A DNA stretch of 64,000 nucleotides from Paragordius varius (lineage: Eukaryota > Animalia > Nematomorpha), in the NCBI GenBank assembly GCA_964247055.1, contig OZ176053.1, positions 7,254,001-7,318,000 of the forward strand, in the 5' to 3' direction. How positions within the stretch are numbered: the stretch's first letter is position 1; every line of letters begins with the position of its first letter. Made by a program: the position numbers and the translations under genes. Under the pieces are notes generated by a model. The model searched no databases. It was not told the origin of the DNA and saw only the letters and a program-made list of their open reading frames with translations. Of the stretch, positions 6,508 through 61,700 are shown piece after piece.

Positions 6508-8224
6508 TCTAAATAATATATAATACAGTTAACAAGTATTTTATTTAAAACCTTTAGACCTTATTTTCAAAAACGCTTTTCTATCCTCCATTAATTTATA
6601 TTGGTTTAAGGCAGGAAGGATGGATAAAGTGATTTTTTGATTAAAGTTAGAATGCTTACACGGTCTTATATAACAACATCGTGTAAGCTTTAACTTTGCT
6701 GTGTTGTCAATGTTAAAAAATTTTTAATAAAACGCTACTGCTTTCACATATATATATATATATATATAACTGTAAATCTATTATACTTATTTAATCCCAT
6801 ACTTATTAATTTTTTGTATTTATTTTAATGATGGTGTGTGAAAATTTATGTACATAACTGGTTTCTCAGCGCGAAAACAAAAAAGTGTTAATTTCTTTTG
6901 CTATCACATGTTTTTTGTTATTTTTCGACAAAACTGTTGCATCTTCGATAAAAATCTTTTGGAAATTATATTAAAGCCATTAAAAAATTATATGGCTATT
7001 TTTTCCATGAGCATTTTATTAAGAACCAAGGTTAGTTGTTAACCACACTCTAAGTAACATCTTCCAAAGTTTGTATAAGAAAATACCATAGAATGAAAAT
7101 GAAAAACCGACGAATTGCACAATGTGATTTCGAGATTGGCTAAACTTTCTAGTTAGCGGTAATTAATCAATGCCTTGTACATTTTTGTTTTAGAATTTTA
7201 AGCAGAATGAATGCCTTTGTTTGAATATAACCCGTGTTCTATTAAATACAAAAGTTTTAGCCTTGACAATCCTGCACAAAACAATGAATAATGATTATGC
7301 ATAATATTTTTTATAACATTTGGTTTTTGTATACTAATTTAAGATACCATATTATATAGTAACTAAGAATATAAGCGAATAAGATTAGGTATACTGGAAT
7401 ATTAAAATTTGATTTTTCCTACGAGTACAATAAAAACTTTTTTCAATTTGTGTGGTAGCTATTGTTAATAGTTTTTCAACGAAGCATAGTATATACCCAA
7501 CATTATATTATTTTTAAAATTAGGATTACATTTATCACACAATGAAACTGATAATATAGAGAAAAACGAACTAAAATATAAATAAATATATTTCAAAAAG
7601 ACAACTATATTTTTTGAACCTTGAGATTGAATGGATATACACAATTTTAAAATATATAATTAAAAGTGTTGCCAATTCACATTTCTATTTTTTATTTTTA
7701 GAGCGAAAATGATAGGTTCTTTTTTAAAAAATCAGGGATTAAAAATATGCTTGTTTTAGAAAAAATATATCTTTAATTTTTACCTTTTGTCTATATAATT
7801 CATTGTTAACGTATTTTCCGCATAAATTAATTGACTGCATTTTAAACTTTTTTGGCCAAGAGAGAGGGATAAAGTTTTATTTTTTCCAAAATTCCAATAT
7901 TTTTTACGGGACCCTTTATCGCCTTAATTGGTGTTTTGAGATTGCCTATATACCCTCAATTTACAAGGAATATTCAGTTTATTTTATCAAACCTACTTTT
8001 TTGCTTAAGTTATTTTTGGTAGGAATGGGGAGGCATAGCTTGCGTTTCTTGCGCTTGGTGCGAATCGTGATTGCCCCCCCTCCATGCAAACCCTTTTATT
8101 TTAAAAAAATAATCGAATTCAAACCGTGGTCATAACTACTCATAAATGGGTGATTTTTTTGTGTATGATTAAAAATTATAACCTTTAAATACATATTTTT
8201 TGAAACAAAACTAAAAAATTTTTA

Positions 8225-8296
8225 AAATCCGGCGCCCCTTTGACTATGGCGCCCGACGCCTCAAATCCCATCTCTCCCGCTCTAACTACGCCACTG
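8225..8296. mobile_element. Solitary end of a hAT-type MITE
   Basis: GC-rich GGCGCCC motifs ending in TACGCCACTG, the reverse complement of a CAGTGGCGTA terminus typical of hAT MITEs. The partner end was not found. Confidence 0.45.
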
Positions 8297-8769
8297 GGAA
8301 TGGGTTTTATTATAACTATATAAATAATATGTATTCTTGTTTGGATGGGTTCATGTATCTTCCCCAAATGTTGAATCCAATTGACATATTTGGTTACGAA
8401 AATTCTTTCAGAATCGCATTTCAAATAACATCTTTTAAAAATATCCTTTTTATATAATAACACAGTGTTCGCAAAAAGGTATCCTGATGAGATATATATG
8501 TGGGAAAATTTAGCAGGATTATCACGGTTCATTTGGTTTTGGCCAGTACGAGTGATTTAAGAAAGTTATTTAAACTTTTGCGGTAACTTCTCCATATAAA
8601 AAAGGCTAAATTTGCGAACATTTTGTTAAATGAATTTTTTGATGTAGGCTAAGTGCTTCATTCCAAAAAATATTCTTATGATCAAAACAATATTTTTATA
8701 AAATTTTAATTATAAATGGTGCTTCGAAAGTCCCATTTTTTTCGCTCCTATAAAATGGGCTAACATTTA

Positions 8770-9460
8770 TAACCCTTTCACAGTTTTGCTCACGACGACA
8801 TTTGGGTGGTTTATATCCCTAAACTAAATCTGGAAAATAAAGTACTGTTTCGAAAGCTATTTAGTTAAAATCCATTATAAACATAGTTCAAGAAAGAAAA
8901 ATCTTATATATTCCAAGTTTTGCGAATTTTATAGTCTAAAATTGGGACAGCTTCAAAACTAGTTAATTATTTACATTCTCTAATTATAATATTGCCTATT
9001 TTGCGAATAAACATTTTATTACCTTTTGGGCCTAGTTTTATATTCCAGGGAGATTTAAAATTTGAATATCTTAAAAATTATTTAAGCTATTAAGCCGAAT
9101 TAAGCTCATTGTGTAAGAATTTTTTTTAATGTAAAATTATTTCTCAAACTTGTTCGTCACCATTTTTTACTCTTTTTTTAAATCGCATGAACAGGCATAA
9201 ATGTATATTATTGTTAGTAAATGTAAATAGTTAAAAAAATATTTTACTACATTTTATCAGCAAAAACCTGATATATATTAAGTATCCGCTGTCCCAATTT
9301 TAGTCCCTAGAAGTCACAAAACTGTAAAAAATATGAGTTTTTTTATTTAATTCATGAGATGCTTTTTTAACTAAAAAAACTTTCAAAACAATAGTTTATT
9401 TACCAGATTGAAATCTGGGCAACCCCGATGTGTCGTTGCGGACAAAAAATAAGAAAGTAA
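8770..9460. repeat. Degenerate palindromic (foldback/MITE-like) element
   Basis: The left arm ACGACGACATTTGGGT...AAATCTGGAAAATAAAGTACTGTTTCGAAAG mirrors the right arm (reverse complement CAACGACACATCGGGGT...CAATCTGGTAAATAAACTATTGTTTTGAAAG). Inner pair AAAATTGGGACAGC / GCTGTCCCAATTTT. Confidence 0.6.
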
Positions 9461-10250
9461 AGTGTTTATAGTTTTGTCACTTCTAGAGTCTAAAATTAGG
9501 ACAACCCTTAAACACGATTGTAACAAGCAGCCTATGTTAATTAATTATCAAGTTTTTGCTGGTACCATTTAGCTTGAAGACTTTTAAAGTTAAGTATAAC
9601 ATTTCTTAACCATAAAATACAAAATTTCCCCTGTTGCATTAGCGATTTAAAAAAATTTAAACTAAAAAAATGACGGCCAATTTGAGATGAGAATTTTTTA
9701 CGATTTTACATTTTCTAACAATATTTTTTTGTATTATTATGCACCAAGGCTAAAAAATGTATATTTTTATATTTTTGTCCTAATAGCTCACATACTTTTT
9801 AAGATAATCAAATGCCAAATCGCTTTGGAATATAAAACTATCCCAAATGGTCATAGTGTTAAGAAGCGCAAAAGCGAGATTTTATTATTTGTATATTATA
9901 CATTATGGCATAAAAACCCACATTTTTGAAAAATACATTAGCATTTTGAAGCGTTCATGGTATTTTAAAGCCTGATAAAAATATGTAATCGAAATTTATA
10001 AGTAAAAAAAAAACGTTCAGCATGCTCAAATATATAGATCTGCTTTTACAATATCTTAGAGCGTTTACTGTTTTCCTTATGCTTCAAAATATAATGAAGT
10101 ACGCCTCACAAAATTTTGCAGATAATTAATTTAGAAATATGCATTTTTTAAAATATTTTTAGTTGATATAAAAATTTAGCATATATTTAAAATTTTTATC
10201 GCACAATTTTGGCATCTTTGCTTATATCATAAGAGAACTAGCTCATTTAA

Positions 10251-10822
10251 CACTTGGATACAACACACTCATTTTAGTCCTTCGATTCAAATTGGGGTAG
10301 TTGGATACCCCAGGCCTGTTTAAAATCAAATAGTTTAAAAAGTATGGAAGCAATCGAAATCATGGCAAAATTTTGCACTTATATAACATTAATAAACCGA
10401 AATATATAAAAAAAATTTATTCATAAATACTTGATATTACTTATTTTGAGCTAAAACTGAAAAGTAAAAATTTAGTCAACGTGACATGTGTGCGATGGTA
10501 AAATTAAAAAATAATACAAAATAAACCGCTTTTTCTATTTTTATCAATGTTAGATGTAAATATAAAAATAAGTTTTAGTTTTACCTTTAAAATTAAATGA
10601 AGACGATATTTTGCTAAATTTTTGTAAAAAAAATGGCGTCGAAGTAATTTGAGGTGGAACTTTTTTTTCAAAAAATTTTATCAAGATATTTTGGCATATT
10701 TATATAATATTCATCAGGATAGAAGCATAAATTTGAATTGGGACCGTTTCCCAGTAGTTTTTTAAAAAGTTTAATTTAAATTTAGTCTGGGGTATTTAGA
10801 TACCCCAATTCGAATCGAAGTG
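10251..10822. mobile_element. piggyBac-like MITE
   Basis: TTAA on both sides (10247-10250, 10823-10826). Inverted ends CACTT..CGATTC(A/G)AATTGGGGTA..ATACCCCAG; the left end is interrupted by about 25 extra nt. Confidence 0.6.
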
Positions 10823-12042
10823 TTAAAACGGCAAAAAATTTGTGAGGAAGCCACATCGAAATTTTTTTAAACATTGTTTTTCTTTTTCTATGTAGTTTAT
10901 GATATATTTTAGTAATATTTTTTGGAATTAAGCTTTTAGCTTCACAAAAGTGCAAATTTTGCCATTTTAGATAGGATTTACTAAAAAAGCGAGAATAAAT
11001 TATTATAACACTCGTGATGGTCAAAAGCAAAAGGATCATGATAAAACTGACACATTTTCCTATCAGAATATATATATTCCATGGATATTTTTCTACCGAA
11101 TTTGACGTCACAAAAAATTTGCTGTAAGACTATTGGTTAGATGATGTGTGTGGAAAATGAGGATATATTAGCAATTATATGAGCGTGCCAAGCCGCATTA
11201 AGTTTATCGTACAACTATGTAAAAAATGTAAATTTTTACAATCTTAACACCTTAACATATTCATTTTTTTTGTAGACAATAGATTTTTCAATACTTTTGC
11301 ACCTCTTAACTTGTAAAAAAACTGTTGTTATGAAAATTATTTTGGCTAAAAATTTAGTATCAAGCATTGTTATCATCTAATGTTTTCCGTTTTTTCGAGG
11401 CAGAGATCGAAATTTCTCCGAACGATAAATAAAAGCTGATTTATAATAATACATAAATTTGTTGCTAAAGTGTAATTTTAAATCTGTTTAAAGGTAGTTT
11501 AACTATTTATAAACCATAATATACGTTTATTTGCCTTTTATATTAAAAATTTTAAAAAAACGAAAATGTCGCAGTTGAGGTTAGGATTTCGCATTTTCTA
11601 TTCTTTAGATTTTTTAAATTATCTGTTTTCGAATTCGGCCAATTATGAAAATGATATTCAAATTTTCTCTGGAGTTGGTCTACTGGATTATTACTATTTG
11701 AGCTATTTTAAAAAGGATGTGAAAAAATTAAAAAATGTAAACAAAAAGGGTTTTGACAAAGATATATAAACACATTCGATCGGGAAAGACCCCACCCTAT
11801 ATTTAACACTTATTTTTTATTATATAAGCTTTTAAAAATAAATCTTTTATTATATTTGGGTGCATCAATGTAAAATGGAAATTTTTTTAATGTTTCAATT
11901 TGTTCCATATCTTTAGAAATATTAGATATTTAACAAGCCTAGGGTCCCAAGACTAAAATGCATGTGTTGTTGTATGCAAGTGTTAAAGTTTGATCAACAC
12001 ATATTGTATTTCATTATTTCATTTTAACCGGTTGTTATTGAA

Positions 12043-15000
12043 ATGGTATCACACGAGAACATCAAACTCAACCCTTTTTATCATCGTCCCCATTGGACAT
12101 TTTATGAATATATTAAAGTATTAATATATATTTTATGCAGTTATTTTATATGTCTTTCACAATTTTGCCCTTTAAAATTATTGGGTCTATTGTTATATTT
12201 CTTGTATTGCATTTTTTTGTATGCCTTGCATATTGGTTTGGTTCTCGAGGAAAATCATTAAGCATGAAAAAAGATTATATTGACAGCCATATGATACATG
12301 AAAAACCATTATCCGGATTTATCTATTGGTATATTTTATGTATTATATAAGTTTGTTAGTGGATTACATAATTAATCATTTGGTAAGAGCATTACTGTGG
12401 GTGTGTGGATTTTATAACATAAAAATAAAAGGAAATCCCGATCCAAATGCCAAAGTTTTGGTTTGTGCCCCTCATTCTACATTTGCTGACAGTATAGTGG
12501 TTATGTACCCACGGTTAAAATCTATTGTAGCGAAAAGGGCAGCAAAAAATCTTCCAATTTTCGGAAGTATTTATTTATTATTATAATTATTTTACATTTA
12601 GCCTCCCAAAAGATATATTATTCTTCTTTTATGTTATGTTATATCGTTAGGGTTATTTTTGAATCAGTATTTTACGCCAAAATGTTTATCTCCAATTTAA
12701 CAATTTTTCATTATTTATACAATCGTTTGATTGTTTATGAAAAATGTGGACATGCATTTTAAATTGCTGATAAAAACTTTGTTATCTTTTTTATTAGTTT
12801 TTTCATTTACGATTAATTTAAACAGTATTACAATTGTTCAATATTATAAAGCCTACAGCTTATATTAAACTGTATTTTTTTCTATCCGACTGTTTTATAT
12901 GTATCGAATTAAGCTCTCTTTGTAAAAATATTTGAAAATAATTAACTAATAGTATGATTGCTCATTTTTTAATTGTTCTTTTTGATTTAGCATTATTGAC
13001 TTTTATCCAACCAATATGGGTCGAAAGAGGGGAATCCAAATCCAGAAAAGTTGCTCTTCAAACTATAAGTAATCGTGTACATGCTATGGACATTGAGTCT
13101 GAAAACGAAGAGAATCAAAGCAATGGTACAACAAGTATAAACAAATATTATAGTATTTAATAATTTTTTCCCGCATTAATTATGGTTTTTTGGGTCATTT
13201 TCTATACAATTCTATCAAAGTATTTAAAGTTATTTTCGTAAAATGTTTTTTTAAGATTTGTTTAGTTAAGTTTTTTTGAAGTCAAACAAGGGCTGGTATT
13301 TATCATCATTATTATATCCCAATATAATATTTGCACTATTTATTCATGTAATTATATGAACCCTTATATAATTAATTAATTACGAGCACTCTTTTTACAT
13401 TTGCGAATTGTTAATTGAATGATTGTTGAATTATATACCCAATTATATAAATCAAAAATAATAGAGGTTCATAACGGAAACTTTGACACACATCAATCAT
13501 GTAATGCCCAAATTTTAAAACGACGAAATTCTTTACGTTGTCAAGAGAAATGGCCACAAATTTGTATATTTCCTGAAGGAACTTGTACCAACCGCAAAGC
13601 ACTGATTCCATTTAAAAAAGGTTTTAATTTTTCTCCTCTATCAAAAAAATATTTTATGATTTTTTTTAACTTCCCATTAATGAACATATTTAACCATTTT
13701 GTTTTCACGAATCTATAGTTATTGCAATTTTGGATTAGAAAAACCGGTTTGAATATGAATTAGGGTAAATCAACGAAATTTTGGCTTTTATTTGTCATAA
13801 CTTTTAAACAAATGTTCAAATTTTTATGTTATAATGATTTAGGTGCATTTTTTCCCGGTCATCCAGTGCAACCCGTGTGCATCAGATACACAAACAAATT
13901 TGTAATTTCTAAACTTTACTTTAGAACACTAGATTTTTTAATTTTCTATATACTCTCCAAATTTTATATGCATTCTAGTTATCTTATTTTAAGCTTGTCA
14001 TTATAAATATTGTTTAGAAATAATTGATATCCCAATATAATTACACCAAATTTTTTACTGTGTTGTAATTTGTTTTTAAAAAGTACCATAAAAATATATT
14101 GTTAAAACTATCTATCTAAAATATTTTTCAACATTATCTAGGATTGTTTAACTTGGACGTGGGATGGACCGCATACGTAACGCTTTTATTTTTTATATGA
14201 AAGAGTTATTTTAATAACCATTCATTAATTATAATATTAACTTTTATTTCATGTATGTATTTAACATATAGTTTGTTGGTTATATGGTGGTCCTTATGTC
14301 AATTCCAACTATCCATAACACTTGAGGTAAATTATTTTTATTTTTGTGTGCTATATAAATGGGATGAAAATGTCATGATTTGCCATTAATCCCTGACATC
14401 TTTTTATATTTTTATTAAATAGTTTCTAATATTCATATTTAACATGGTTGCTTTAATCCTACTATATGATTTAGTTATTCATTAAATGATTTTATAATGT
14501 ATTATTTAGTAACTAGTGTATGTTAACGTATTTTAATAAAATTATATCCGAATCATCTTTTTTTTATATGTTCGAAAACTTTTAGGGCAATATAATAGCA
14601 TCTATAACATATATGTATTTATAATTTGATTTAGTATCTTTCAACTTATTATCCTTCCAAAGAAGAACGCCAAGATCCCAATTTATTTGCTCAAAATGTG
14701 CGTGAATTGATGGCTAAGTAAGATAATTAAATACAATGATTTTCTTAAAATGAAGCTTTATTAGGATTAGATTTGACTGTTATCCGTGACTAATTTAAGT
14801 TTAGTATAAATATGTAAAATCTTTAAAATTCCAAGTCATGTTTTCAATATGTTAAAACCACTATTATGATTGCTTATCGTTTTGTTTATGTTCACCATAT
14901 ATTTACATTTCATGTCATAATCGAATGGTTATAACTGTAAATGACTGCATTATAAGCGGTTAGGCTGGTTAATTTTTGACTGGCCGAAACCCATTTCTAT

Positions 15001-16378
15001 TCACTATTTTAATAGCACTATGTATGCTAAATTAATTCCCTAATTCGCTTTGTTTTACATATATTGCATTTTTCGTCGTTGTTTGATTTATTATCGCGAA
15101 TGATTACATTTATAAGCGGTACTACCAGTTATTTAAAAAATTTAATTGGTCAAAACCCAAGCCCTACTAGTAATTATAATTATTTGATTATATTTATACG
15201 ACAGACACCTCAATATCCCTTTAAGTGATTACACCTATGAAGATGTGCGAAATGATTGGGAAAAAACTCAATCAATAAAACGATTTCGTTTGATTCAATC
15301 GGTTAAGGACGATTATACAAACAACAAATATATATCATGTCTTTTAAAGCTCATTACGAAATTTTCGGCTCATATATCTGCATTGACACTATTCAAAAAT
15401 AGACACCACGAGGTGTCTTACGTTATTTCTGAACAAAATGATCTGAATATAACAAATTTTACACACATTAACAATTGTGATAATGATAAAACTGTGATAA
15501 ATTTCATTATAAACCAAAAATGTCTCAATAACCACTCATTAGCTGGTTGTAAAGCCAAAATTGAAAAATGTTTGGATACCTTTTCAGTGCATAAGGCAAT
15601 GCCTCCTGATAAATTACGATCATTATGGATAAAATTTTACCAATCCCTAAACATCTCTAATCCAAAAGTATGATTATCTTGTTTAGAAACTAATTATTTA
15701 TTAGTATGACATGTCTTTTAATATTTTTTCAAATAATGCGACTTTTTAATGTTGTTAAACATGAAAATTAGTCACATCAACCTTACGACCAGATTAATTA
15801 TATTTATGATAAATTAAGTTTTTTTATGTTATATACAAATTATATAATTTGCAATAGATATCATCCATTCATTTAGATCTCATTACTCAAAGTTTTCAAA
15901 TTTTGCAGTTTAGAAAATACCTAAAAACGGTACAATATTATTGATTTTAATTTCATATACATTATTCTATATTTCATTTTTTAAGTGTTTCTTTTTTTAA
16001 AAAAATTATAATAATTAAATTATATTATAATGAAATCATTTAATTTTCATTCCATTGTTAGAAGGATGATAATAGCCAAAGTTCAGTTGCTAAACATATA
16101 AACGGAGAATTAAGCCAATCTTACAGTGATAAAGCTAATCTTGATCTTGATGTATTTTTAGGTTACAACATTAATTATTTTATAACCCCTTGACATATAT
16201 ATATAAATTTATATTACTTATGTGTTTAGCTGATCTTCAAAATCAACTCATAAATATTTTTGGGCAAACAGCTTTCGATCTAATTAGTCAAGAAATGTAT
16301 GATGGTTTAATTGAATACCTATCTAATGATAAACTCCATGGAAATGGTATACTTGACAAAAAAACAAAAGCAGCATAA
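12043..16378 (+). CDS. LPCAT: Lysophosphatidylcholine acyltransferase (LPCAT1/2-like), 13 exons, about 597 aa
   Basis: Exons 12043-12117, 12141-12328, 12352-12566, 12991-13134, 13465-13620, 13843-13901, 14142-14176, 14272-14326, 14635-14717, 15205-15667, 15858-15929, 16062-16161, 16230-16378 join in frame (1794 nt). Motifs PHSTFAD (HX4D), WPQICIFPEGTCTNRKAL, GAFFPGHPVQPVCIRY, DCLTWTW, DPNLFAQNVRELMA, SDYTYED. Confidence 0.93.
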
Positions 16379-31500: not shown

Positions 31501-34500
31501 TATATGTTGAAATTTCAAAATTCGTTAAAAGTAGATGACTGAAAATATGGAATTTTTTATATTATAAAAATTATATTAATAAAGTATTCCTTATAGTAAA
31601 ATAAAAGTATACCTGAGTTATTTCAGCCAAAAATGTATTGTGAAGTGAACATTGTCTAAGTAAACCATAAATTAAAAAGTTTTATTTAAATGTATCAATT
31701 AGAATTGATAAAAATAACCAATAATACCTTAACAATCGAGGGGAAAGGGCAAAATAGTTATCTTTGCTTCTATAATACAAAAGTTGACTAAGGTAAGTCA
31801 AAGTTTCATTCCGAAGGCTTGTGACGCGTTTACCATATTTACCCGATTTGGTAGGATCCAAAAAAGTGATAAGCTAATTTCGAATGTAATTTTCAAAATA
31901 AAAATGCAAAGATATTATAACATAAGGCATAAAGAATAAACGAATTCAAATTAATCAAAAACAAGGATTTTAAGTAAATATTTTTAATGAAAAATTTACA
32001 ATAAAATAAAAAAAAGGTGAATAAAACATATTATACATGCATCATAATTTTCATAATCATATTGAAATGGTAAGAAATATCTTCGTTTTGTAGACAACTA
32101 TCATATAGCGTGTTGATTAAACTTGAGACTTGATCATCATCAAATTCTTTCATCATTCCAGCTATTATATATTCATTTATTATAATATCAATAAAAAAAA
32201 GTAATTTTCGATATTATCCATCCATCCATTCATTTTAGGTCCCAGGGTATCTGGGGTTTCCATGCACCAACTTCCTGAACAATGTCCTATCAAAGACTTG
32301 TTCGTGTTCAATATTGAAGTGTGATAGATCTTGGGTCAGCTGTTTGGACCATGTGAGCTTAGGGCGGCCTTTTCTGTTTGGGCCGGGTATATTTAAATGT
32401 TGTATTTTTTGGACCCAGTTATCGGAATTCATACGTTGAATATGTCCGTAATATCGCAATCGATTGCGCTGGATGAATAAAGCTATGGGTTCATCTTCTT
32501 CTATGGTATTATCAAAATTATTGTTGCAGATTTTGAGCATGTGATTTTCAGCTCTAGTAAGTCTATTTAGGTCTGTTGCTGTAAGGGCCCAGGTTTCTGT
32601 AGCGTATGTCATAGCTGGTCTTATTCCCATTTTGTAAATCTTTATCTTGTGATTCGATTTGATATTTTTATTAGTTAAAATATATTTTAATTGATTGAAT
32701 TTGGCCCATCCTTGTTTGATTCTATGAGAAATGGCATCCCTCAAAGAACCATCTGATGCTATATAATCGCCCAGATATGGAAAAGATGTTACAACTTCTA
32801 GTTTATCTCCATTAAAGTTTAAAGTACGTGGATTCGATATTGGCAGTGGTATTGATGAAGCACATGGTGTGCAGATGAAATTATTATTATTAATTAACTT
32901 TCCTTTTATGTTGGAACATTTTTTATGGACCCAATTTCTGCATTTTGTACAACAAAGTGAGTTTAGTTTTACCTCAGTGGTGCACACTGGGCATGGGAAC
33001 TTTATAGTTTTATGTTCATCTCCTGTGATTAGAATTTTAGTTTTGTTTGTATTGATTTTAAGACCGTATTTATGTAATTGTTTTGACCATATAAGATATT
33101 TATTTTCGAGTACTGAAATATCTTCTGCAGTGATTATGAGGTCGTCTGCATAAAGAATTTCATAAGGCAGACCTTCTCTCATATCTTTTGTTATGTAATC
33201 AATTATAGCTATAAAAAGAAGTGGGCTAAGGACAGATCCCTGATGCAGCCCAGTATTTATACTAAAATACTCTGAATTCCCAACAGGAGTAAGAACACAA
33301 CTGATTGAGTTAGTGTAGATTAACATAATTAACTTAATGGTATATTCATCTACGTTGTTGTAGCGCAGTGATTCTATTATTAGTGCTCTAGGTACTGAGT
33401 CGTAAGCCTTTTCTAAATCGACAAAAAGGTGGAATAGTTTACGACCTTTTGCTCGGTATTTATCTTGTAATTGTCTGACTAGGAAAATTGGATCGATTGT
33501 GCTTTTGCCCGCTGAAAAGGCGAATTGCATTGGATTAATTGATATGAGCTGGACGATACGATTTTTGAGGCACATTTCAAAAATTTTTAACCCATGTTCA
33601 AGAAGTTTTAAGGGCCTGTATGAGGAACAGGTTAGGATATCTCCTTTATTTTTGAAAATGGGAAATATAATGCTTTTTTCCCAGTCATTATATATTTATG
33701 AAATTATTTTAAAATTAATATTATGTTTGTTGGCGTATATTTTGATCATAAAGATACGACTTTTAATAAAAATTATATTTAACCTAAATATTTTTCCATA
33801 AAATCAATAGTTGCCCAAAACTCGGTTCATGCGGCCGTGCGAAACTTTTTGTGCGGCCCGCGATAAACTTGGAAATCCATAATTTGCAAAATATGCCATA
33901 AAAATAAAATGATATTTTTTAAACAATTTTTCTGATTAATCTCTTCAATTGGCAACAAACTATATATAATTGTATTTGTGTTTGCATTTTACCGTCTTAT
34001 GTTTAAAATTTGATAAATTGTTTTAAAAATGTGGCGCGCAAAGCCATTTGTGTTAAAGACATTTGGTTTAAATAAATCTTACAATAAGGGGATTCATTTG
34101 TTTGGGATTTGTTGATGATGTTGTGTTTATCTGATGACCGTGAATTAGAAAATTCAGAAGTGCCACCATTCTTAGCCAAAATAAAGCTATCAAGAGAAAA
34201 TTGGATCGAAGTTACAACACTTGATTTAAACAAGAATGGAGGTGAGTTTATTTGGCTGGAAAAACCAATATTATTCTTATTAGTAATATGGTTATTGTTA
34301 GTATCATTTATTTTATCAATTAGAGCAAAACATTTTTTGATGGAAAAAACTGTGTTTGATGTTGTAAGTGAAACCAAAACTTCATTAAAACGTGATATTT
34401 GGTGTTTTCTATCTTTCCGTATGGGACGAAAACCTATTATAAATTTGACATAAATGGAAAAAAATATAAATGTCAAGGCAATAAAATATTTTAAATTTAA

Positions 34501-49829: not shown

Positions 49830-50931
49830 CATCCATTCTTCCGTTTTAGGTCCCAGGGTATCTGGGGTTACCATGCACTAATTTTATGAACAATGTTCTA
49901 TCAAAGACTTGTTCATGTTCAATATTGAATTTAAGATATCTTGGGTCAGCTGTTGTTTCCCCATGTGAGTTAGGGCGGCCTTTTCTGTTTGGCCCGGGTA
50001 TGTTTAAATGTTGTTTTTTTTACCCAATTATCGGAATTCATACGTTGAATATGCCCGTAATATCGCAATCGGTAGCTCTGAATGAACAGAGATATGGGTT
50101 CTATTTCTTTTATGGTATTATCAAGTATATTGTTGCAGATTTTTAGCATGTAATTTTCGGCCCTAGTAAATCTATATAAGTCTGTTGCTATAATCAATGC
50201 ATAAACCTGCAGAAACTATTTCAATACTCGAAAATAAATATTTAACGTGGTGAAAACAATTACAAAAACACATCTTAGGATCAATAACAAACACAAAATT
50301 CTAATCAAGGAGAGGAACATAAAACTATCTAGTTCCATGCCCAGTGTGCACCAATGAAGTAAAACTAAACTCAATTTGTTGTGCAAAATGCAGGAATTGG
50401 GTCAAAAATGTTCCAAAATGAATGGAAAAATAATTAATAATAATAATTTTATCTGCAGATAAGGTGCTTTATCGATACCACCTCCAATATCTAATCTACT
50501 TAAATCTTTAATGGAGACAAACTGAAATCGAAACATCTTTTCCATATCTGGGCGATTATATAGCATGGGCTAAATTCAATCAATTAAAATATATTTTAAC
50601 TAATAAAAATATCAAATCGAATCACAAGATAAAAATTTACAAAATGGGAATAAGACCAGCTATGACAAACGCTACAGAAACCTTGGCGCTTACATCAACA
50701 GAATTAAATAGACTTACTAGAGCTGAAAATCACATGCTAAAAATCTTCAACAATAATCTTGATAATACCATAAAAGAAGTAGAACCCATATCTCTGTCCA
50801 TTCAGCGCAACCAATTGTGCGATATTACGGGCATATTTAACGTATGAATTCCGATAATTGGGTACAAAAAATGCAACATTTAAACATACCCGGCCCTAAC
50901 AGAAAAGGCCGCCCTAAACTCCTATGGTCCA
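49830..50931. mobile_element. Degenerate family A RTE copy with an internal inversion: minus-strand 3' end (49830-50189) joined to a plus-strand segment (50190-50931)
   Basis: Both arms align by eye to the 32217-33689 copy (GGTCCCAGGGTATCTGGGGT; GRPKL; ATETLALT) and carry frameshifts and small deletions. Confidence 0.9.
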
Positions 50932-50933
50932 TA
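50919..50933. repeat. Target-site duplication of RTE family B, 3' copy: CTCCTATGGTCCATA (5' copy at 55455-55469)
   Basis: An exact 15-bp direct repeat; flanking bases differ on both sides. Confidence 0.95.
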
Positions 50934-53900
50934 CTTGATACTTGATGGCTTTTTGACTTCATCTTTGAAGGTTTCCGTGAACGGTCTTATTCCAAAGGTC
51001 CTTATCTAGGCATTTGGTAATGTCGAGGTTTAGTATTTTTATGTCATTTTTAATGTCGCTCCAGGAATGTGTTGGGCGCCCTTTGCGGTTGTTTCCAAAG
51101 GGTTGTATGTGCTTAATGGTTTGGAGTGGGTGGTCGGTTTGTCTTCTTTCAATGTGACCCAAGTATTTAAGCCTGCTTCTTTGTATAAACTTTTCTACTG
51201 TGTCATTTTTGTGTTTAAGATGAATATTGTAGTCAGAACAACAAGCTTTAATTATTTTGTTTTCCGTATTTATCATTTTGTCAAGATTTGTTTTATTTAG
51301 GGGCCATGTTTCGGTGGCGTAAGTAAGAGCTGGCCTGACACCTGCTTTGTATATTAGCCATTTATTATTGTTAGATACATTTTTATTTTTAAGGACAAAT
51401 TTTAGGGAGTTGACTTTACCCCATGCTTGTTGGATTCGTTTCTGTATTGATCCAGTTATATGGCCTTTAAAGTCTATGACGTCTCCTAGGTATGTAAACT
51501 GGTCTACTTTTTCTATTGAGTTTTCGTCGATTGTCATATATGTCGAGCGTGTTTGAGTTGTATTATTGGTTTTACAGTTATTACATTTAAAATTTATTTG
51601 TTCGTTGAGGTTGCCGGTGATTTTGGAGCATTTTTTGTGAACCCAGAATTTGCATTTGTTGCATTTTATTGAATTTGTTTTGACTTCTTTGTCGCAGATA
51701 GCGCATGGATATTTGGGGCGCTGCGTTCTCCTGATATCATTATTTTTGTTTTATTAATATTTATTTTCAGCCCATGGTTCTCTAGACAGATTTTCCATGT
51801 TCTGAATTTGTTTGACATATTTTCCATTGAAGTATCTGTTAGAACAATATCATCCGCGAAGATTAACTCCCAGGGCGGTTGGGTAGATATGTTTTTTGTG
51901 ATACAATCTAATATTATAATGAATAGTAATGGACTAAGTACACACCCTTCGTGTAGGCCAGTGTTTGTCTTGAAAAGTTCCGTGTCTCCTATTTGCGTGC
52001 GTACCATTGTAGTTGTATTTTCATAAAGGAGTAATATTATTTCTATTAAATATTCTTCGATGTAATTTTGTATTAGGGCCCATTTGATTGTTGCCCTAGG
52101 GATATTATCAAAAGCTTTCTCCAGGTCTAGAAATATGTGGAAAGGTTTTTGATTTTATGAAAGGTATTTTTCCTGTAGTTGCCTGATTATGAAGATGGCA
52201 TCTGTAGTGCTGTATTCTTTACGAAATACAAACTAATTATTTGTTATTGTAATGGTTTGTCTAAGGCGGTTGTCAATGATGCTTTCAAATATTTTGAAAG
52301 TGTGTTCTAAAAGTTTTAAGGGGCGGTATGAGGAGCAGACGAGACGATCCCCCTTATTTTTATATATAGGGATCGTTATACTTTTATTCCAATCATGGGG
52401 AATTTCACGTTTGGTAAGAATTTCATTAAAAAAAGTTGTAAGGTAGGATGTTAAGCATGGTATTGGTATAAGCAGATCGATTGATAGTTCGCTGGCAACT
52501 GACGACTTGTTTGGCTTCATTTTTTGTATTGCTTTTATTATTTCATTTTCTGTGATTTCGTGGATGGGTCCGCTTGTGGGTGGTTTTAGTGTTAGAGGGA
52601 TTTTTAAATTGTTGGTTTGGTTCATTGATTCTTCCAAGCTTTCTTTCCATATCTTAATTACTTATTTCTGGGTTAGAGATTATTTCATTCATATTGTTTT
52701 TTATACATTTGGTTTTGATGATGTCTTGTTTGTTTGAGTTTATATTCTTTATGTATTTAAAGATTTTTTTTAACCTGGTCCTCTAGTTTAGGCCGGTTTT
52801 AAGCAATTTTTATTTATAGTTTTTCTAATTTCTTTCTGCGCTTTGTGTTTTGCGTTCAGATATGTTTGTCTGTTTTTATCATTGCTATCCCTTTTCCATG
52901 CTTTGAAGGCGTCGTTTTTTTCTTTGGTAACCTCTTTTAATTCCTTTTTCCACCACCAATTTTTCTTTTTTTTATTGTATGTTTTGCATCTCCCACAAAT
53001 ATTATCTGCTGTTTTAACTATTGTTTTTAGGTTATCCCATTTTGAACCAATGGATTCACTGTTTTGCTGGAGCTTTTCGGATGCCTGGTTGATGTATTTG
53101 TTCCTGATTGTCTGATTTTGTAGTTTATTGTGGTTGATTTTGGCAGGTCTTTGGTATAAGGGTTTATTTTTTAGTTTTTTCAAGACAGCAATCACTATTT
53201 TGTGTTGAGTGAAGCTTGTTTGATGGGTTTTAATGTTAAGTAATTGTGGCCGTTTTATTTTAGGTAAAAGGATATATTCTATCATGGTAGATGAGTTTGC
53301 TGTTTGAAAAGTGGTAAGTTGAGTGTGGTTTTTTGTGAAGTGGGTGTTGGCTATGATTAGTTGGTTTGCTTGGTAATATTCTAACATCTGTTATCCCATT
53401 TTGTCAGTACTGCCATAGCCGTTTCCGCCATGGACTTCTCTGAAATCGTGTTCATTATTACTAATGTGACTAATAGAGTCACCTCCTAAGAAGATGGATT
53501 CCTTGCCTGGTATTGTATTTGTTAGATCTTGGAGTTCCGTCCAAAATTGTTGTTTAATTCGTCTTTTAAACCTGGTTGGGGCGCATATATCGATATTATA
53601 TTTAGGATGTCATCGTGCACAACCTTAAGCTGTATAATTCTTTCATTGTGTCTCGTTACTTGGATAACGTTTTCGCGAAGACAATTTTTAATCGCTATCG
53701 CTACACCAGCCTGACCATTTTCTTGTCCTTGATAATAAAGTGTTTAATTGTTCGTGGTAATTAAGTTGTCTCCTTTTAATCTGGTTTCTTGTAAGCAGCA
53801 GATGTCAACATTCTTAGATTCGAGATAATTAATTATCATGTGTAGTTTTCCATTTAAAGTACCGATGTTCCAGGTAGCAAATTTAAATGTGTTGAGATTA

Positions 53901-55455
53901 TTCATAATTCAGGTGTCGTGTTATAATTGTTATATCAGTTTATTATTATAATTATTCGGTATTGGAATCGTTATGATGAAATAAAAAGTATTAAATTAAT
54001 TGGTAGGAGGATTTTGTAATTAAGATATAATGTTAATAGTAAGAAAAATAAATAAGATATAAATATATTATTGTTATGATAGTAGGTAGAAGTTATTAAA
54101 AATGTAATTTCAATAATTATTACACTAGTCGACAAATTTGGACATTTTTGAGCACCACCACTCAAACTTTTAAATTATGACTAATTTCAGTGTTTTAAAA
54201 CTGAATGTGAAAAAATTTTTGATCCCGCCAATCAGAATTTTGAAATATTATAGGTTTTTCAATTTTTCAAAAACAAGAGAAAATTAAATATAACTTTATA
54301 ATAAAATGTTATTATCTTATAAACTTAATATCATATAATAAGGCGTTTTAAACTCTATCTTTTGAATATAAATATGTCATTTAAATATCAGAGAGAAAAA
54401 AATAGTACGGACTTAAACGTCAAAATTTAGTCTTTTTCTTTCAAGTGAATTTTTAATACGTATAAAAAAATTTTAAAAAAATACTAAAAAAGGCATTCTA
54501 TGGTTTAAACCTTCGGCTTTCAGATAGACTATATTTTTTTGTTAGTTTTTGTTCTTTCGAGTACTTATTAGGCTTTTTTTTCTTGAGTTGGTTCTTACAA
54601 AAAATCCTTTATTTATACCTAGTGGATATACTTTATTTTTTAAAATTATTGGTTGTTTTGTATTTTTAATTTCAGATGGATGTTGTGTAGACACTTTTAG
54701 TAGAATTTACTATTATGGGATTGGACCATTTGTATTTACCTAATCTTTTTATTCAATTTAATTGTAGAATTTATCTAACTTTATTCTGTGAATTGGTTAA
54801 TTTGACATGTCAATTTGCCTGGAGTTTGCTAGCAAGTCTCTCTTATCGGGCTTTACGATTACTTATTGTTATCTTTGCCATATCTGGCATAATTGGATCG
54901 CTTGGGGGATATGCAGAGCTTGTGCAGCCGCCCGGATCTATCACACTATACATAAGCCCCTTTTAGATTTTTAATACTTTGGCTCTTAGCTTGTTTAGTA
55001 TCTTATTTAATACCTAGAATTTTGTTATTCATGCATGGCATATTACTTGTATCGACTTGTTCGTTTGAATATTTAAACATATGTACACGAGGAATGATTG
55101 TTATTTTTGAATTAAATACAAATTTAAAAATTTCGGAAAAATCCTATTGGCGGCCTCAATTTTCTTGTTTGTTTTGGCCTTTCCATGCCATTAGGTATAG
55201 AAAATGCAAAAATAATGGGGTGGTGCAAAACCTTGTTGAGCAGTGCTATCGTTTCGTTAGAGAGTTAGTAGTTTTTGAATAAGACGTGTTCATGGTGTAT
55301 ATGTTGAGGCGAGGTTTTTACTTTTCACATGCCCTTGTGAAAAAACTCCTTACGGAGTAGATGTTTTTGAACATCCAAAACTGGCCACTGCTGTTCGTTC
55401 ACCAAAAGTGATCCGACCAACACCGCGGGGAGGTAGCAGTAGGACTTTGTTGGTC
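50934..55455 (-). mobile_element. Full-length RTE-clade non-LTR retrotransposon (family B, about 4.5 kb), APE-RT ORF disrupted
   Basis: APE begins at 53905 (MNNLNTFKFATWNIGTLNGK...CCLQETR). RT fragments: FLDLEKAFD, GLHEGCVLSPLLF, IFADD, V..FTYLG, ending HGNLQR* at 50959. Tail (ATCAAGT)2, 15-bp TSD, several stops and frameshifts. Confidence 0.95.
55387..55455 (-). ncRNA. HDV-like (delta-like) self-cleaving ribozyme at the element 5' end
   Basis: Minus strand: P1 GACCAAC (55455-49)/GUUGGUC (55421-15); J1/2 AAAGUCCU; P2 ACUGCU (55440-35)/AGCAGU (55392-87); P3 ACC/GGU; L3 UCCCCGC; P1.1 CC/GG; P4 UCAC-UUUUG-GUGA; J4/2 ACGAAC with the catalytic C at 55397. All elements are in the canonical nested double-pseudoknot order. 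Confidence 0.92.
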
Positions 55456-55724
55456 TCCTATGGTCCATATATTTAAAAATAATTAATGACTGAATGTAGT
55501 AAGTAATTATGTTTTAGGTCTAAAAAGTATGGTTGACCTTACAAAAAATAATAGTTTATACCTTTTAATGATTAATCTATTTTAATTTAGCTGATTTCTA
55601 ACATAAAAAAATAACTCTGTTTTCGTTCGATTAATTAAGTCACACAACAATGTGCTTTTATTCTTAAATTTTTACCTTATCTAAGAATTAAAACTCTACG
55701 TATTTATATTCACATTTATTATCT

Positions 55725-58700
55725 TTATACACTATTTTTTTCAATAATATTGTCAGTTTCTTCATCGCTTTGTTCCAAAAATTGTTCCCAATTTTTGAGT
55801 CTTTTAGCTTCGTCTTCTGGTGTTTCGACAATCTAAAAAACATTTCACATAATTAGATTTATACTAAAAATTTATTCGCTTGTGAGTTTTAACAGCGCCT
55901 AAAAAGTAATGCGCTAATGCTAATACACTTTTTAATAGGGTTTTTAACGTCAGGTATTTCGACTCTCATAATAAGCCAAAACAAAAAATTACATTTAATC
56001 ATTTATTTAAATTTGTTTTGATATATATATCATCAAAGCTGTTGTTCTTCAGAGTTGAAGGTAGCTGATTTGAGATAAGTTTTTATTGCTGTTTTCCAAT
56101 TGTTTCTATTTTCCGCATCTTCTATTTTTAATTTGGTCTCAGTAAGATCATCATATATAGTACTGATCCAGCTTTTGAAGGGTCTGCCAGGCTTTGAGCT
56201 AGGTGTGGAGTAGGACATCATTATATGTATATAATTATCTGGTGGTCTACGATGGATGTGACCAGCCCATCTCAGTCTTTTAGCTCTTATAAAGCGATCA
56301 AGAGCAGTGATATTAAAGATTTTATAAGGGCCAAATTGATTATTAAAGTTAAAGAGTTTAGGATTATGTACAAAAAGTATTGTATTGAGTATTTTGGATT
56401 CTGATCTTTAGAATTTACCAAGGTTTGACTTTGTCATGGGCCAACATTCCGTGCCGTAGGTTAGTGCGGGACGGATAATGGTAGAATATAGTTGCGATTT
56501 TGTTTCAAGTTTTATGTATTTATTATTTATTATGTGTTTTAGTGCATGGTATTTTTTCCATGCTTCAGATGATCTGTGTTTGAGGCCATCACTGATACCT
56601 CCTTTTGCGGATATTTCGTCACCCAGATATTTAAAGTGAGTAACAGTTTCGTAATTGTAGGTATTAGGGATTGAGTTTAAATGTTGTTCTGGTATGGGTA
56701 GGTTGTCGATGCAACTTGGGCAAGTAAAGGCATCAACCCTAAGAGATTTTAGGTTTGAGCATTTTTTATGTATCCAGAAATTACATTTAGTACACAATAT
56801 AGAATTTGCCTTTACAGCTAGGCTGCAAATTCTACATGGGTACTTAATGGGCTTTATTATATTGTCGTGCATTAGTTTTGTTTTGCTGGGATTGATTTTA
56901 AGGCCATGACTTTCCAAGCAATTTTTCCATTTGTCAATAGATAAGATGAGATCGTCTTCAGATGAGCCCATTATTACCAGATCATCTGCAAAGAGCAGTT
57001 CCCAGGGTAAGCCCCTGCGAATGTTCTTTGTAATCTCATCAATTATTATGATGAATAGTAAGGGACTCAGGACAGAACCTTGGTGCAGCCCTGAGTGTAT
57101 ATTGATGGATTCTGATAGGCCATAGAAAGTTTTGATTTGGGCTTTGGAGCCGGAATATAGCAACATTATGCTTTGGATAATCCATTCTTCGATTCCCTTT
57201 CTTCTTAGGGCCCATGTTATCATCGATCTTGGGATAGAGTCAAAAGCCTTCTCTAGGTCGAAGAAGGCATAATAGAGAGGTGTATTTCTGAGATGGGCTG
57301 CTTGCATTTGGTGGAGTATGAAAATCGCATCAATTGTGCTTTTGCCAGATTGGAAGCCAAATTGAATGTCGTCTAGATGAACTTTAAGTTTAATCTTATT
57401 GTATAGAATGAGCTCAAAAATTTTAAATGTGTGTTCCAAGATTTTAATGGGCCTAAAAGAGCTAGGTAGGAGTGAATCACCTTTTCCCTTGTAGATGGGT
57501 ATGATGATGCTGTTTTGCCAGTCTTCAGGGATAACTTCCATTTGTATGATGAGGTTAAAAAGTTAGATAAATGATCACTTATTGTAGCAATGGGTTTAAG
57601 AATGTCGACAGTAACTTCCGACAATCCTGGTGTTTTACCGTTCTTTAATTTTAGAATCGCCGATTGAATGCAATTTGCATCAATGAATTCAGGGCACCCT
57701 AATGTTGGCGGTACATAGGGTAGGATTGTGTTATTTTCTTGATTTAAAGTATTTTCAAAGTAGTTTGCAAAGGTTTTATTAACTATGGTAGGAATTTGAC
57801 AGATGTTGTTATTGTCTGTTTTCACCGATTTTATATATGTGGTGGTGTTGGTTGGGTTTGAATGTTTGATGTATTTGTATATTGTGTTATTTTCTGTATG
57901 TTCGTCAATATTTTCTGCAACTTCAAGGGCTTTAATGTTTATAGCTTTACGTATTTCTTTTTGGCAGTTTCGTTTTGCAGATAGGTAGATGTTTTTATTT
58001 TCAATCGATGGATTTTTCCTGTAGTTTAGGCTGGTTTTGCGTTTAAGTTGAGTCAATTTACGGATGTCTTCATTCCACCACCAATTGTGGGTCGAAGGAA
58101 TCCGCCGGTTATGCTTTGAACGTCCAACCAAGGAATCAAGAGTATTGACGCATATAGTTTTTATATTATTCCATATTTCATTTGGGTTTAATAATGTTTC
58201 CTTTGTCCATAGTAGTTTATCAGCTGTGGAAGCGTAGGAATTTTTTATATTATCATCTTTAAGTTTCCGGTATCTGATAGGTTGTTTCTTTGTGGGGGGG
58301 TGAGTAATAGTATGGGTGTTCCTTATTACAAGTTCTAAAATCATTAGTTTATGGTTTAAATTCAAGCAAGGTATTCCTTTGATATTAAAATAATTTTTCC
58401 TTTGAGTTTGTTTGCATAAGAAGTAATCAATCATGGAATTGTTATTTCCTGAGGAGTAAGTGTAACGTTGTTTGAGGGATTTTTTAAAGAAAGTGTTTAT
58501 TATGCTTAGTTGACAGCTGTTGGATAAGTCCAATAAAAATTCACCATTTTCATTTGTCTCGTTTAATCCCCAACCTCCATGTACAGATTGAATAGGATTT
58601 GTGGATATATGTGAATTAAAATCCCCAGAAATTATCAGTTGATGATGATCGGGTACATTTATTATTTGCTCATGTAATTGAGACCAAAAAGCTTCTTTAT

Positions 58701-61700
58701 CTTTTAGTGAATGGCCGTTGTGAGGCGCGTAGATCGAAAATAAATTGTATGTTATATTATTAATAAGGATTGTAATGGATATAATGCGTTCGTTTATATA
58801 ATTAACTGCCTTAATATTGTCATATAATGAGTTGTGGATGAAGAAACCCACACCAGCTGTTTTAACTTTCTTGTTGCCGTTCCAAATTAATTTAAAATCA
58901 AGAATGGATTTGGTTCCGGAATTTAGCCATCTACATTCTTGAATAGCGCAAATTGGAATATTTCTTTCCTTAAGCACGTCAGCAATCTCCAAGCCTTTAG
59001 ATGTTAGCGAATTAATGTTCCAGCTGCCGATGCGAAATTTAGAAGGATAGTTCATTAGTTAAAAGTATGGATAAGTAATTTATGTATTGTAGGATAAATG
59101 AAACACTATTTTTTACAGAGCGGATGTACTTCCTGGCCTCCAACTGCTAAGGAGCAGATAAGATAAAAATATTTTTTTTTTAAAAAAAAAAGGAGCTGAG
59201 CCGCGAACTGCAGCTGATTACATGAATCAATATGAATTTTTCCAAAAATATGAATTTTTCCAAAAATGAATTTTTCATATATATATATATATATATATAT
59301 ATGCAGAACATTTTAAAAAACTGAAAATTAAAAACAGTAAATGTTAGGTATATATACTTTATATTTGGTACGTCCGTCCCACCTTTCAAAATGTACATGC
59401 CGATCTTTAAAACTGAAATTTTCACCCAAATTATCCATACATTCATCGGCTTCCTCAATTGTGGCAAATGTTACAGTTGTTACGCCCTCTGGGTGTCGCT
59501 GTAACAAAAAATTATAAATATTTTTAGCAATTAGCAAAAGTAGCAATGCTAATTTTATATTAAATATTGCCAGATACCATATATTGCAAAGAGCAATCGG
59601 TTTATTATTTTTTTCGTTTTTTCTTGTTCTTAGCCTAATAATAATGTTTGCTGTGTATTCTAATTGGCAATAATAAATGAAAAATTAGCAATATCCTTTT
59701 TTTCAAACTAAAAAACGTAAAATTTTTAAACATCTCGTTCAGTACTTTCATACATAATAAAGTGGTTGATTAGTAAATTTATTTAATATTAAATATTGGA
59801 GAAACCAGGTATATGAAAACAATATTATTAGAATGGAGTCCAACAAAAAAATAATAAATTAAATACTATTGAACAATAGTCTTAACGTGATATGAAATAT
59901 TCAATCATTTGTTTAGGTTTGAAAAAAAATTAAATGAATTTGATTGACTGCATATAAGCATCGGACAAGTTATTATTTCTACCGTCAATAAGCCTCTACT
60001 CATGTAACATCATAACTTGAAAAAACAAAACAAATAGTTTATATTTTATTTTATTTTTACTTTTGACAAAGATTACTTGTAGTAATCGAAATATTATAAT
60101 AAATTTATATTATTTTTGCTGAATTATTCCATATATAATAGTATTTTTATTATTATAGAGTATAATTTGTTTTAATTTAATTAGGCAATTAGGGTTCCCC
60201 TTTTAAGTAATTATAGTATAAAAAATGTTAGTATTTAAGCAAATGTGAAATATATGGGGCAAAATGTTATATATCGGTTTTTTCCCTCAATATTTTGTTT
60301 TTGATGCGAATGTTTTTTCTTAAACAATCAGTATGTCTAAAAGTATATATATAAATTAATAATAAAAGATTGAAGGAAATATTAAATTACTAATGAAATA
60401 AAAGCAAATATAATTGTAATTATGCATCACTTACATCGTAAACTTTAATCTTTTTAACGTTTCCATATTTTGAGAAAATGTCCCTTAATTCTTTTTGATA
60501 TTTGAGTATGAGGGAAGGATCATCCTAAACAAAATTATATATATAAATTGCGTTTCCAATCCGTAACATTTAATTAAAATTTAATTGTTTTCAAAATAAA
60601 AAAACTCACATCAAATAATTTTGGATCAAAAACATTTTTGATGACTAATGTTTTTTCTCGTCCATGCCTTAAACCGGGTATAGGTTCCGGCTTCCATGCT
60701 AACAATCTAATGCAAAATAATTTGGATTATTTTTTAAAAAAGAAATATATGCCACCCTATATTGTATAATTCGAAAATGCTTTTTTTATAATAAATTGTA
60801 TTCTGTTATCCTGCCAAATATTATTTGGGATCTTACGGTATTTGCTAATCAAACATGTAGTGGTTTTAATTTTAACTCATTGATTAAATAATTGTTTTTT
60901 TAATTGAAAATGAGAGATTGTAAATTCAAGTAAAGTAAACATTTTATTTATTAAATAAAGGAAATTTGGGTAAATAATTTTAATAACTAACTTTTCTTGT
61001 TTGCTTTCCTTTGTTTGTTTTTCCGTGCCCTTTTTCTTTTTAGGTTTTAATTCGGGATTATAATCTCCCTTCATAGTAAATTTAGCCCGTTCAACCTTGA
61101 TACATTTATCTCGCAAAATGGTTCCATCAATAATCTGTAAGGCCAAAGTTACTGATTCAACCTAAATTTAATATATGAGAAATAAAAAAATGACAATATT
61201 TGTCAATTTTGTCGTTTTAATTAAAACTTAGTTGATAATTATCTTTCTGTTACATTTAATTATATTTTTTTTTAAAAACCGAATTTTAAGCATAATGAAT
61301 ATAATAAGGTTGTCATAAATTTTAGATAAAATTTGGTTAAAACGAGTAAAAACTTTACTTTTAAATAGCAACAGCGGCCATCACCCTTAACATTGCCATC
61401 GGGATCGAGGTATAATTTAATTTTTAATTGCTTAGTATTTGGATCTTGCATTATTATTCCACATTTCGACATAAGTTCTGTGAATTCATCCAAGGTTATA
61501 TCCTCGGGTAAATTGGAAACGTATACATTCGTATTTTTGCTATCATCCATTTCAAACCATTCTAAACATTCAAAAAGTAGATAAATTTCAAAGTTTTTTT
61601 ACCTTTATCACATACTTATCCTACTTTTAAAACCAATTTATTATAAAGAAGTATTTGTTCAGTATACTATTTATAATTTCTTATATAACACAAAGAATAG

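Follow-up and report, generated by a model that had tools for sequence, protein, structure and literature searches.

Self-cleaving ribozymes with the fold of the hepatitis delta virus (HDV) ribozyme are known from several retrotransposons that lack long terminal repeats (non-LTR retrotransposons). According to the account in PMC3774820, which cites Ruminski et al. 2011, HDV-like ribozymes are responsible for 5'-end processing in R2, R4, L1Tc, Baggins and RTE elements, and the cut falls on the 5' junction of the element; R4, L1 and RTE are cases of such a cut. The original work (Ruminski, Webb, Riccitelli and Luptak 2011, J Biol Chem 286:41286), as cited in PMC3774820 and PMC6765202, places them at the 5' ends of RTE, Baggins, R2, R4 and SART. 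The RTE elements that possess such a ribozyme have no promoters of their own; they occur within introns or downstream of another transcription unit, and depend on intronic or upstream transcription (PMC6765202). A role in 5' processing, together with help in translation initiation, has been proposed (PMC7761336). In the RTE element Perere-3 of Schistosoma mansoni, a twister variant at the 5' end does the same job (PMC8501958). Here we describe a locus of this kind in the nematomorph Paragordius varius (assembly GCA_964247055.1, contig OZ176053.1, positions 7,254,001 to 7,318,000; this whole stretch of 64,000 nucleotides is referred to as the window, and positions are counted from its first letter). 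Close to the end of a host gene, 71 nt of the minus strand probably form the 5'-terminal HDV-like ribozyme of an RTE-clade non-LTR retrotransposon of approximately 3.4 kb, which would free the element RNA from a longer transcript; we put the probability of this reading at roughly 0.84. The element is referred to as family B, since two other RTE families are represented in the window.

The ribozyme consists of the following parts, all on the minus strand:

55385-55455: predicted HDV-like self-cleaving ribozyme, 71 nt, from helices read in the sequence, a strict descriptor and the alignment to RF01787
Between A55456 and G55455: predicted scission site, with G55455 as G+1
55455-55449 with 55421-55415: P1, GACCAAC with GUUGGUC, 7/7 Watson-Crick pairs
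Between P1 and P2: J1/2, AAAGU, 5 bases, read from the sequence
55440-55435 with 55392-55387: P2 core, ACUGCU with AGCAGU, 6 bp
55434-55432 with 55424-55422: P3, ACC with GGU, 3 bp
55431-55425: L3, UCCCCGC, enclosed by P3
55414 and 55413: P1.1, two G directly after P1 that can pair with the CC of L3, a reading of the sequence
55411-55407 with 55403-55399: P4, UCACU, a UUU loop and GGUGA, 4 Watson-Crick pairs and 1 U-G pair
55393-55398: J4/2, A-CGAA-C, with C55397 as candidate catalytic cytosine, matching in position the J4/2 CGAA of genomic HDV

P1, P2, a 3-bp P3, P1.1 and P4 are thus present in the canonical order of an HDV-like topology and with the correct spacing, and every helix can be read on the minus strand, in base-for-base agreement with the double pseudoknot described in the original prediction. 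P2 can be extended to 8 bp by the pairs U55441-G55386 and C55442-G55385. The conserved core is also complete, with the cytosines of L3, the GG after P1, and in J4/2 a C followed by a purine and an A. C55397 lies in the CGAA of J4/2 at what we take to be the place of C75 in genomic HDV. The local sequence is 56% GC, compared with 28% for the window.

The closest described ribozyme is drz-Agam-1 from Anopheles gambiae (RF01787), which gave the best Rfam match. Positions 1-82 of the RF01787 model align end to end with the locus, starting exactly at 55455, with a score of 29.6 bits and an E-value of 2.9e-4 for a search of 261 nt, or 0.072 for the whole window. Over the first 44 positions the identity to the consensus is about 70%, and the two ribozymes share J1/2 CAAA-UCC, P3 ACC/GGU, L3 UCCnCGn and GGA after P1. 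They differ in P4, which has 5 bp in the window compared with 10 in drz-Agam-1, and in the sequences of P1 and P2, where the differences are compensated. In P1, two of the seven pairs of the RF01787 consensus (GGCUGAC/GUCGGCC) are changed on both sides and one G-U is changed to G-C, and all seven still pair. The RF01787 model does not treat P1 as base pairs, and the perfect P1 is therefore additional, independent support for the fold. From these comparisons we class the locus as HDV-like of the drz-Agam-1 type and not as a member of the RF01787 family, as its score is below the gathering score of 37.

A resemblance that arose by chance in AT-rich DNA, with no ribozyme behind it, was considered. 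A strict descriptor was used, requiring G+1, P1 with 7/7 pairs, P3 with 3/3 pairs, L3 starting with UCC, GG following P1, a P2 with no fewer than 5 bp, and CNRA ahead of the 3' strand of P2. It has a single match on both strands of the 64-kb window, at 55455-55385, and none in 200 simulated windows (second-order Markov). A looser descriptor gave about 30 AT-rich chance matches in the window, which together with a blank default Rfam scan might seem to favour chance. None of these matches, however, possesses the combined L3, GG and CNRA signature, so that the discriminating power lies in the conserved core, which is present at 55455-55385. Two independent lines of evidence, the start of the covariance model and the end of the target site duplication (TSD) described below, meet at the same base, and the GC content of the motif stands out locally from that of the window. 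Together with a homologue whose P2 is compensated (see below), these results effectively refute chance resemblance, to which we give almost no weight. The descriptor and covariance-model search that had been suggested with the original prediction thus came out with a descriptor match that is unique in the window and a sub-threshold model match that starts at G+1.

A metagenome collection was scanned with the core of the ribozyme (P3-L3-P3'-P1'-GG, two positions free). Of the four contigs that matched, only one encodes a ribozyme. This contig, L008 (VFQN01078218.1; 1.1 kb, 40% GC), carries a complete ribozyme at approximately 406-480 which scores 28.5 bits on RF01787. Its P1, P3 and GG are identical to those of the window ribozyme and its L3 differs at one base. 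In P2 (GUCAUC/GAUGAC) all six pairs are changed on both sides and are still Watson-Crick; J1/2 has 2 nt, P4 has 7 bp and J4/2 reads CUAAC. The 630 nt following the L008 ribozyme contain no recognisable RTE coding sequence (APE endonuclease or reverse transcriptase, RT). As a single comparator, L008 offers limited support for the predicted fold. The remaining three contigs (L006, L007 and L009) are GC-rich with no convincing P1 or P2, and were rejected as ribozymes.

The second line of evidence is the position of the ribozyme at the very end of the inserted element. The element and its boundaries comprise the following features:

55455-55469: TSD copy 5' of the element, exact 15-mer repeat
55247-55384, minus strand: first part of the 5' untranslated region (UTR) of the RTE, contiguous with 54120 in other copies
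54121-55246: foreign repeat of 1126 bp nested in the RTE without belonging to it, flanked by TA and bearing imperfect subterminal inverted repeats
50959-53905, minus strand: decayed single APE-RT reading frame, from Pfam domains and tblastn
50932-50946, minus strand: 3' tail of two or more tandem AUCAAGU units, preceded by a 12-nt 3' UTR after the stop codon
50919-50933: TSD copy 3' of the element, exact 15-mer repeat

The 15-mer CTCCTATGGTCCATA (plus strand) is found exactly twice in the window, at 50919-50933 and 55455-55469. G55455 is both the innermost base of the TSD and G+1 of the ribozyme. Because this base is shared, a duplication of 14 bp puts the start of the element at +1 and one of 15 bp puts it at +2, and the earlier claim that the boundary coincides with G+1 give or take one base is borne out. 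The outer two bases of the TSD may belong to the (AUCAAGU)n tail, in which case the duplication would be correspondingly shorter (13-15 bp overall).

Contigs of public runs (DNA-type) were compared with 50650-55750 and their word depth was recorded. One contig of run X2, which bears the same species label, joins 50922 to 55461 and represents the site without the element. Its depth is 199, compared with approximately 278 for the unique flank, and it is thus near single-copy; inside the 15-mer there is a 2-to-1-base difference. The element-free site is either an allele, i.e. an insertion polymorphism, or a paralogue, and the boundaries of the insertion are confirmed either way. Two contigs of run X4 stop matching at 55453 and continue into flanks that are unrelated to the window and different from each other. 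The 5' ends of these copies lie within 2 nt of G+1. Taken together, the TSD, the element-free contig and the copies of run X4 place the insertion boundary within 1-2 nt of the predicted cleavage site.

The ribozyme belongs to the element and not to the flank. In runs X2, X4 and X9, contigs join 54120 directly to 55247 and run on to at least 55439, into the ribozyme, which makes it part of the RTE family. The ribozyme-bearing segment is hence found as part of this family in at least three differently labelled organisms.

The assignment to the RTE clade follows from the coding region and the ends of the element. We found a single open reading frame (ORF) encoding an N-terminal APE and an RT, with no substantial ORF1, as in other RTE elements. 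Pfam domains were detected on the minus strand at 53744-53905 (Exo_endo_phos) and 51666-52007 (RVT_1). By tblastn the ORF is collinear with APE-RT proteins of 965-1042 aa, in chains that cross frames -1, -3 and -2 and contain stops. Excluding the nested repeat the element measures 3396 bp, within the compact range of about 3.2-3.5 kb that is typical of RTEs, and the shortness of the 3' UTR, like a tail made of short tandem units in place of poly(A), is in line with the clade. Another copy, in run X4, has additional AUCAAGU units before a different flank. The closest relatives of the encoded protein are rather distant. The best reaches 48% identity over 323 aa of the RT region, and a HMMER search with the C-terminal piece of the ORF against 1.84 billion cluster representatives gave a filarial nematode protein with 41% identity as the best match. 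The nearest proteins are VBB35221.1 of Acanthocheilonema viteae and hypothetical proteins of catfish. An exact protein look-up returned no record for the 199-aa ORF piece, and no close protein relative of family B was found in the databases searched (best 41-48%). Inside the window there is no other family B copy, only weak similarity at the RT level to the two other RTE families. The P0001 contig is truncated at its 5' end.

Directly 3' of the ribozyme and before the first AUG of the 5' UTR, three short adjacent hairpins are predicted at 55320-55381 (minus strand). The fold z-score of this stretch is -1.9, and 12 of 200 shuffled sequences are as stable. The hairpins may constitute a structured leader with a part in translating an uncapped, cleaved RNA. 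The only upstream reading frame in the 5' UTR has 15 codons, with its AUG at 55292 and a stop codon that spans the insertion point of the nested repeat (55247 joined to 54120).

These observations are consistent with the following mechanism. The element would be transcribed within a longer host or read-through transcript, in which the ribozyme would fold co-transcriptionally and cut 5' of G+1. The released RNA, starting with the ribozyme, would act as messenger and would also be the template for target-primed reverse transcription. A full-length cDNA would then end at G+1, which would explain that the genomic copies begin at the cleavage site beside the TSD. We infer catalysis, the RNA's 5' end and the order of these events. 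The coincidence of the boundary with the predicted cleavage site makes it the best reading that the ribozyme processed the template RNA at its 5' end, as had been suggested before. The cases described for RTE, R2 and L1Tc (PMC3774820, PMC6765202) point in the same direction, and the suggestion keeps its standing as an inference.

Like the elements of Ruminski et al. 2011, as these are presented in the citing papers, the window locus is an APE-RT element with no obvious promoter whose first nucleotides carry the same fold; the predicted cut is at the 5' junction, and the RTE lies in sense orientation downstream of a host transcription unit. It differs from the cited elements in its host, an animal with an AT-rich genome and micro-introns, in having no close protein relative, and in that its activity is predicted from sequence. 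The R2 ribozyme (Eickbush and Eickbush 2010; PMC3774820) is likewise HDV-like; it releases the RNA of the element from a co-transcript and thereby determines where that RNA begins. R2, however, is site-specific in 28S rDNA with a restriction-like endonuclease, and in many species the cut lies within the 28S sequence, 9-36 nt upstream of where the element starts. The window RTE, in contrast, encodes an APE-type endonuclease, is inserted at a non-rDNA site and has its cleavage predicted at the junction itself. The ribozyme of Perere-3 belongs to the twister class and takes one strand of its P1 from the TSD (PMC8501958), whereas that of the window is HDV-like and lies entirely 3' of the cut, so that it travels with the element.

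Several observations weigh against an active 5'-processing ribozyme. The score of 29.6 bits falls short of the RF01787 gathering score of 37, the level for membership in that Rfam family, and because of this the default Rfam scan of the window (gathering threshold) is blank; the match is visible in E-value mode only. Folding of the 71 nt as a single strand gives no signal (z -0.28), with a program that cannot model pseudoknots. The first pair of P1 is G-C, compared with G-U in HDV itself, a deviation that is shared by the drz-agam-1 consensus. P4 is short, with only 4-5 bp. Compensatory changes are seen in two comparators only, in P2 of L008 and in P1 of the RF01787 consensus. The run X4 copies lose their similarity 2 nt inside the ribozyme, so that the copies do not all share one 5' end. 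None of the sampled words occurs in the RNA runs listed for the species. Furthermore, the four distant, full-length RTE-like contigs L002-L005 are without an HDV-like motif by both Rfam and descriptor, and the motif is therefore not universal in the RTE clade.

Part of this evidence could be explained if the motif were a true descendant of an HDV-like ribozyme that is now catalytically weak or dead, and if the common 5' end reflected transcription from an internal promoter that starts at the first base of the motif. A very short P4, a sub-threshold Rfam score and an activity that is only predicted would all fit such a relic, and the loss of similarity 2 nt inside the motif in the run X4 copies would do so as well. 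All catalytically important features are nevertheless intact, i.e. the CC of L3, the GG of P1.1 and the CGAA of J4/2. Minimal HDV-like ribozymes are known to tolerate a P4 that is short or absent. The P2 of L008, which is complementary while having none of its six pairs in common with the window, points to a fold that is constrained. We therefore regard an inactive motif behind an internal promoter as unlikely, and prefer a self-cleaving ribozyme at the 5' end of the RTE.

The window copy itself is an aged, dead insertion, with a broken reading frame and a nested repeat. We found internal stops and at least five frame-breaking indels. The copies on most other contigs differ in length from the window at 53557, 52790, 52766, 52664 and 51726, and the frame-breaking indels thus appear to be private to the window copy. 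The RTE that was called full-length in the original prediction carries in its 5' UTR the foreign repeat of 1126 bp at 54121-55246, which had gone unnoticed. This repeat has a word depth of about 500,000, compared with 3,000-16,000 in the rest of the RTE (approximately 30-150 times). The jump in depth, together with the joints skipping 1126 bases in runs X2, X4 and X9, shows that a very abundant repeat was inserted into the RTE at a later time. Its subterminal inverted repeats are located at approximately 54164-54241 and 55108-55159, and a TA duplication is present at its flanks. It resembles a non-autonomous DNA transposon of very high abundance, and the window contains no other copy of it.

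The integrity of the ribozyme beside a broken ORF had been taken as a hint that it might still be active or retained by selection. This argument is not supported. The ORF region measures approximately 2.9 kb, about 40 times the length of the ribozyme, and has some 5-7 disabling lesions, so that only about 0.15 lesions are expected in 71 nt. An intact ribozyme is thus what neutral decay predicts and is no sign of selection, which a single copy cannot show in any case.

The location of the ribozyme relative to the neighbouring host gene bears on the same question. The nearest host feature is:

55725-55832, minus strand: last exon of the host gene HTATSF1, from reading of the sequence

This exon (55832-55725) and the exon at 59498-59358 read as the C-terminal part of HTATSF1, a name which we presume from a comparison with the human protein. 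The end of its stop codon is 269 nt from G+1, which lies downstream on the same strand, and AATAAA signals are located at 55720-55715 and 55662-55657, with the ribozyme 200-260 nt past both. As HTATSF1 lies upstream on the same strand, read-through transcription could reach the ribozyme. One may speculate that selection preserves the ribozyme of this copy or that the host has co-opted it, for instance to cut HTATSF1 read-through RNA and so aid 3'-end definition or termination. Its position behind the two signals, and an intact motif next to a broken ORF, would be consistent with this. As outlined above, 71 nt beside a 2.9-kb ORF with 5-7 lesions are expected to be unhit by chance, and the apparent element-free site in a run with the same species label argues against an insertion that is fixed or essential there. 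Selection or co-option is for these reasons very unlikely. In our opinion the ribozyme of the window copy is an intact relic of the 5' end of family B. Judging from its sequence it could cut HTATSF1 read-through RNA, with no consequence for its own mobility.

The surroundings contain further RTE insertions. A second RTE, family A, is located at 56081-59055 (minus strand) within the last HTATSF1 intron (55833-59357), in sense orientation. It is much better preserved, with ORFs of 560 and 377 aa encoding APE, RT and a PHD-like finger; a word-index search with the family A ORF gave one match, with 26% identity. A (TA)n tract is present on its 5' side at 59277-59300. No HDV-like fold was detected on the 5' side of family A (59056-59300) using Rfam and the relaxed descriptor. 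On its 3' side the family B element is flanked by the 3' part of a third RTE family (50501-50932), which lies on the opposite strand and is also found at 32262-33689 and 49961-50193. Other copies of the third family continue past the insertion point with AACAGCTGACCC, a sequence that is missing beyond the family B insertion. The third-family fragment had therefore already been shortened on its 3' side when family B arrived.

The similarity to drz-Agam-1 includes the otherwise variable J1/2. It is conceivable, if rather improbable, that a ribozyme of this type marks one RTE lineage that has moved between distant phyla, represented by the mosquito, the animal of the window and the source of VFQN01078218.1. 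If so, the ribozyme would be a compact tracer of horizontal RTE transfer. Separately, and on equally slender odds, the window copy may influence the 3' end of HTATSF1 by cutting its read-through RNA.

The association of HDV-like ribozymes with RTE elements and the mechanism behind it have been published since 2011, and the locus is a good but ordinary new example that opens no new question. The failure of the default Rfam scan to find the motif indicates that marking the true 5' ends of the RTE families in this genome requires a descriptor or a covariance model specific to the family. Such an approach would separate the RTE families that are led by a ribozyme from those without the motif, e.g. 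family A. The ribozyme, the TSD, the element-free form of the site and the later nested insertion are all visible at this one locus. It thus provides a clean, well-bounded example for the known rule that non-LTR retrotransposons lacking a promoter release their RNA from host transcripts by means of a self-cleaving ribozyme at the 5' end.

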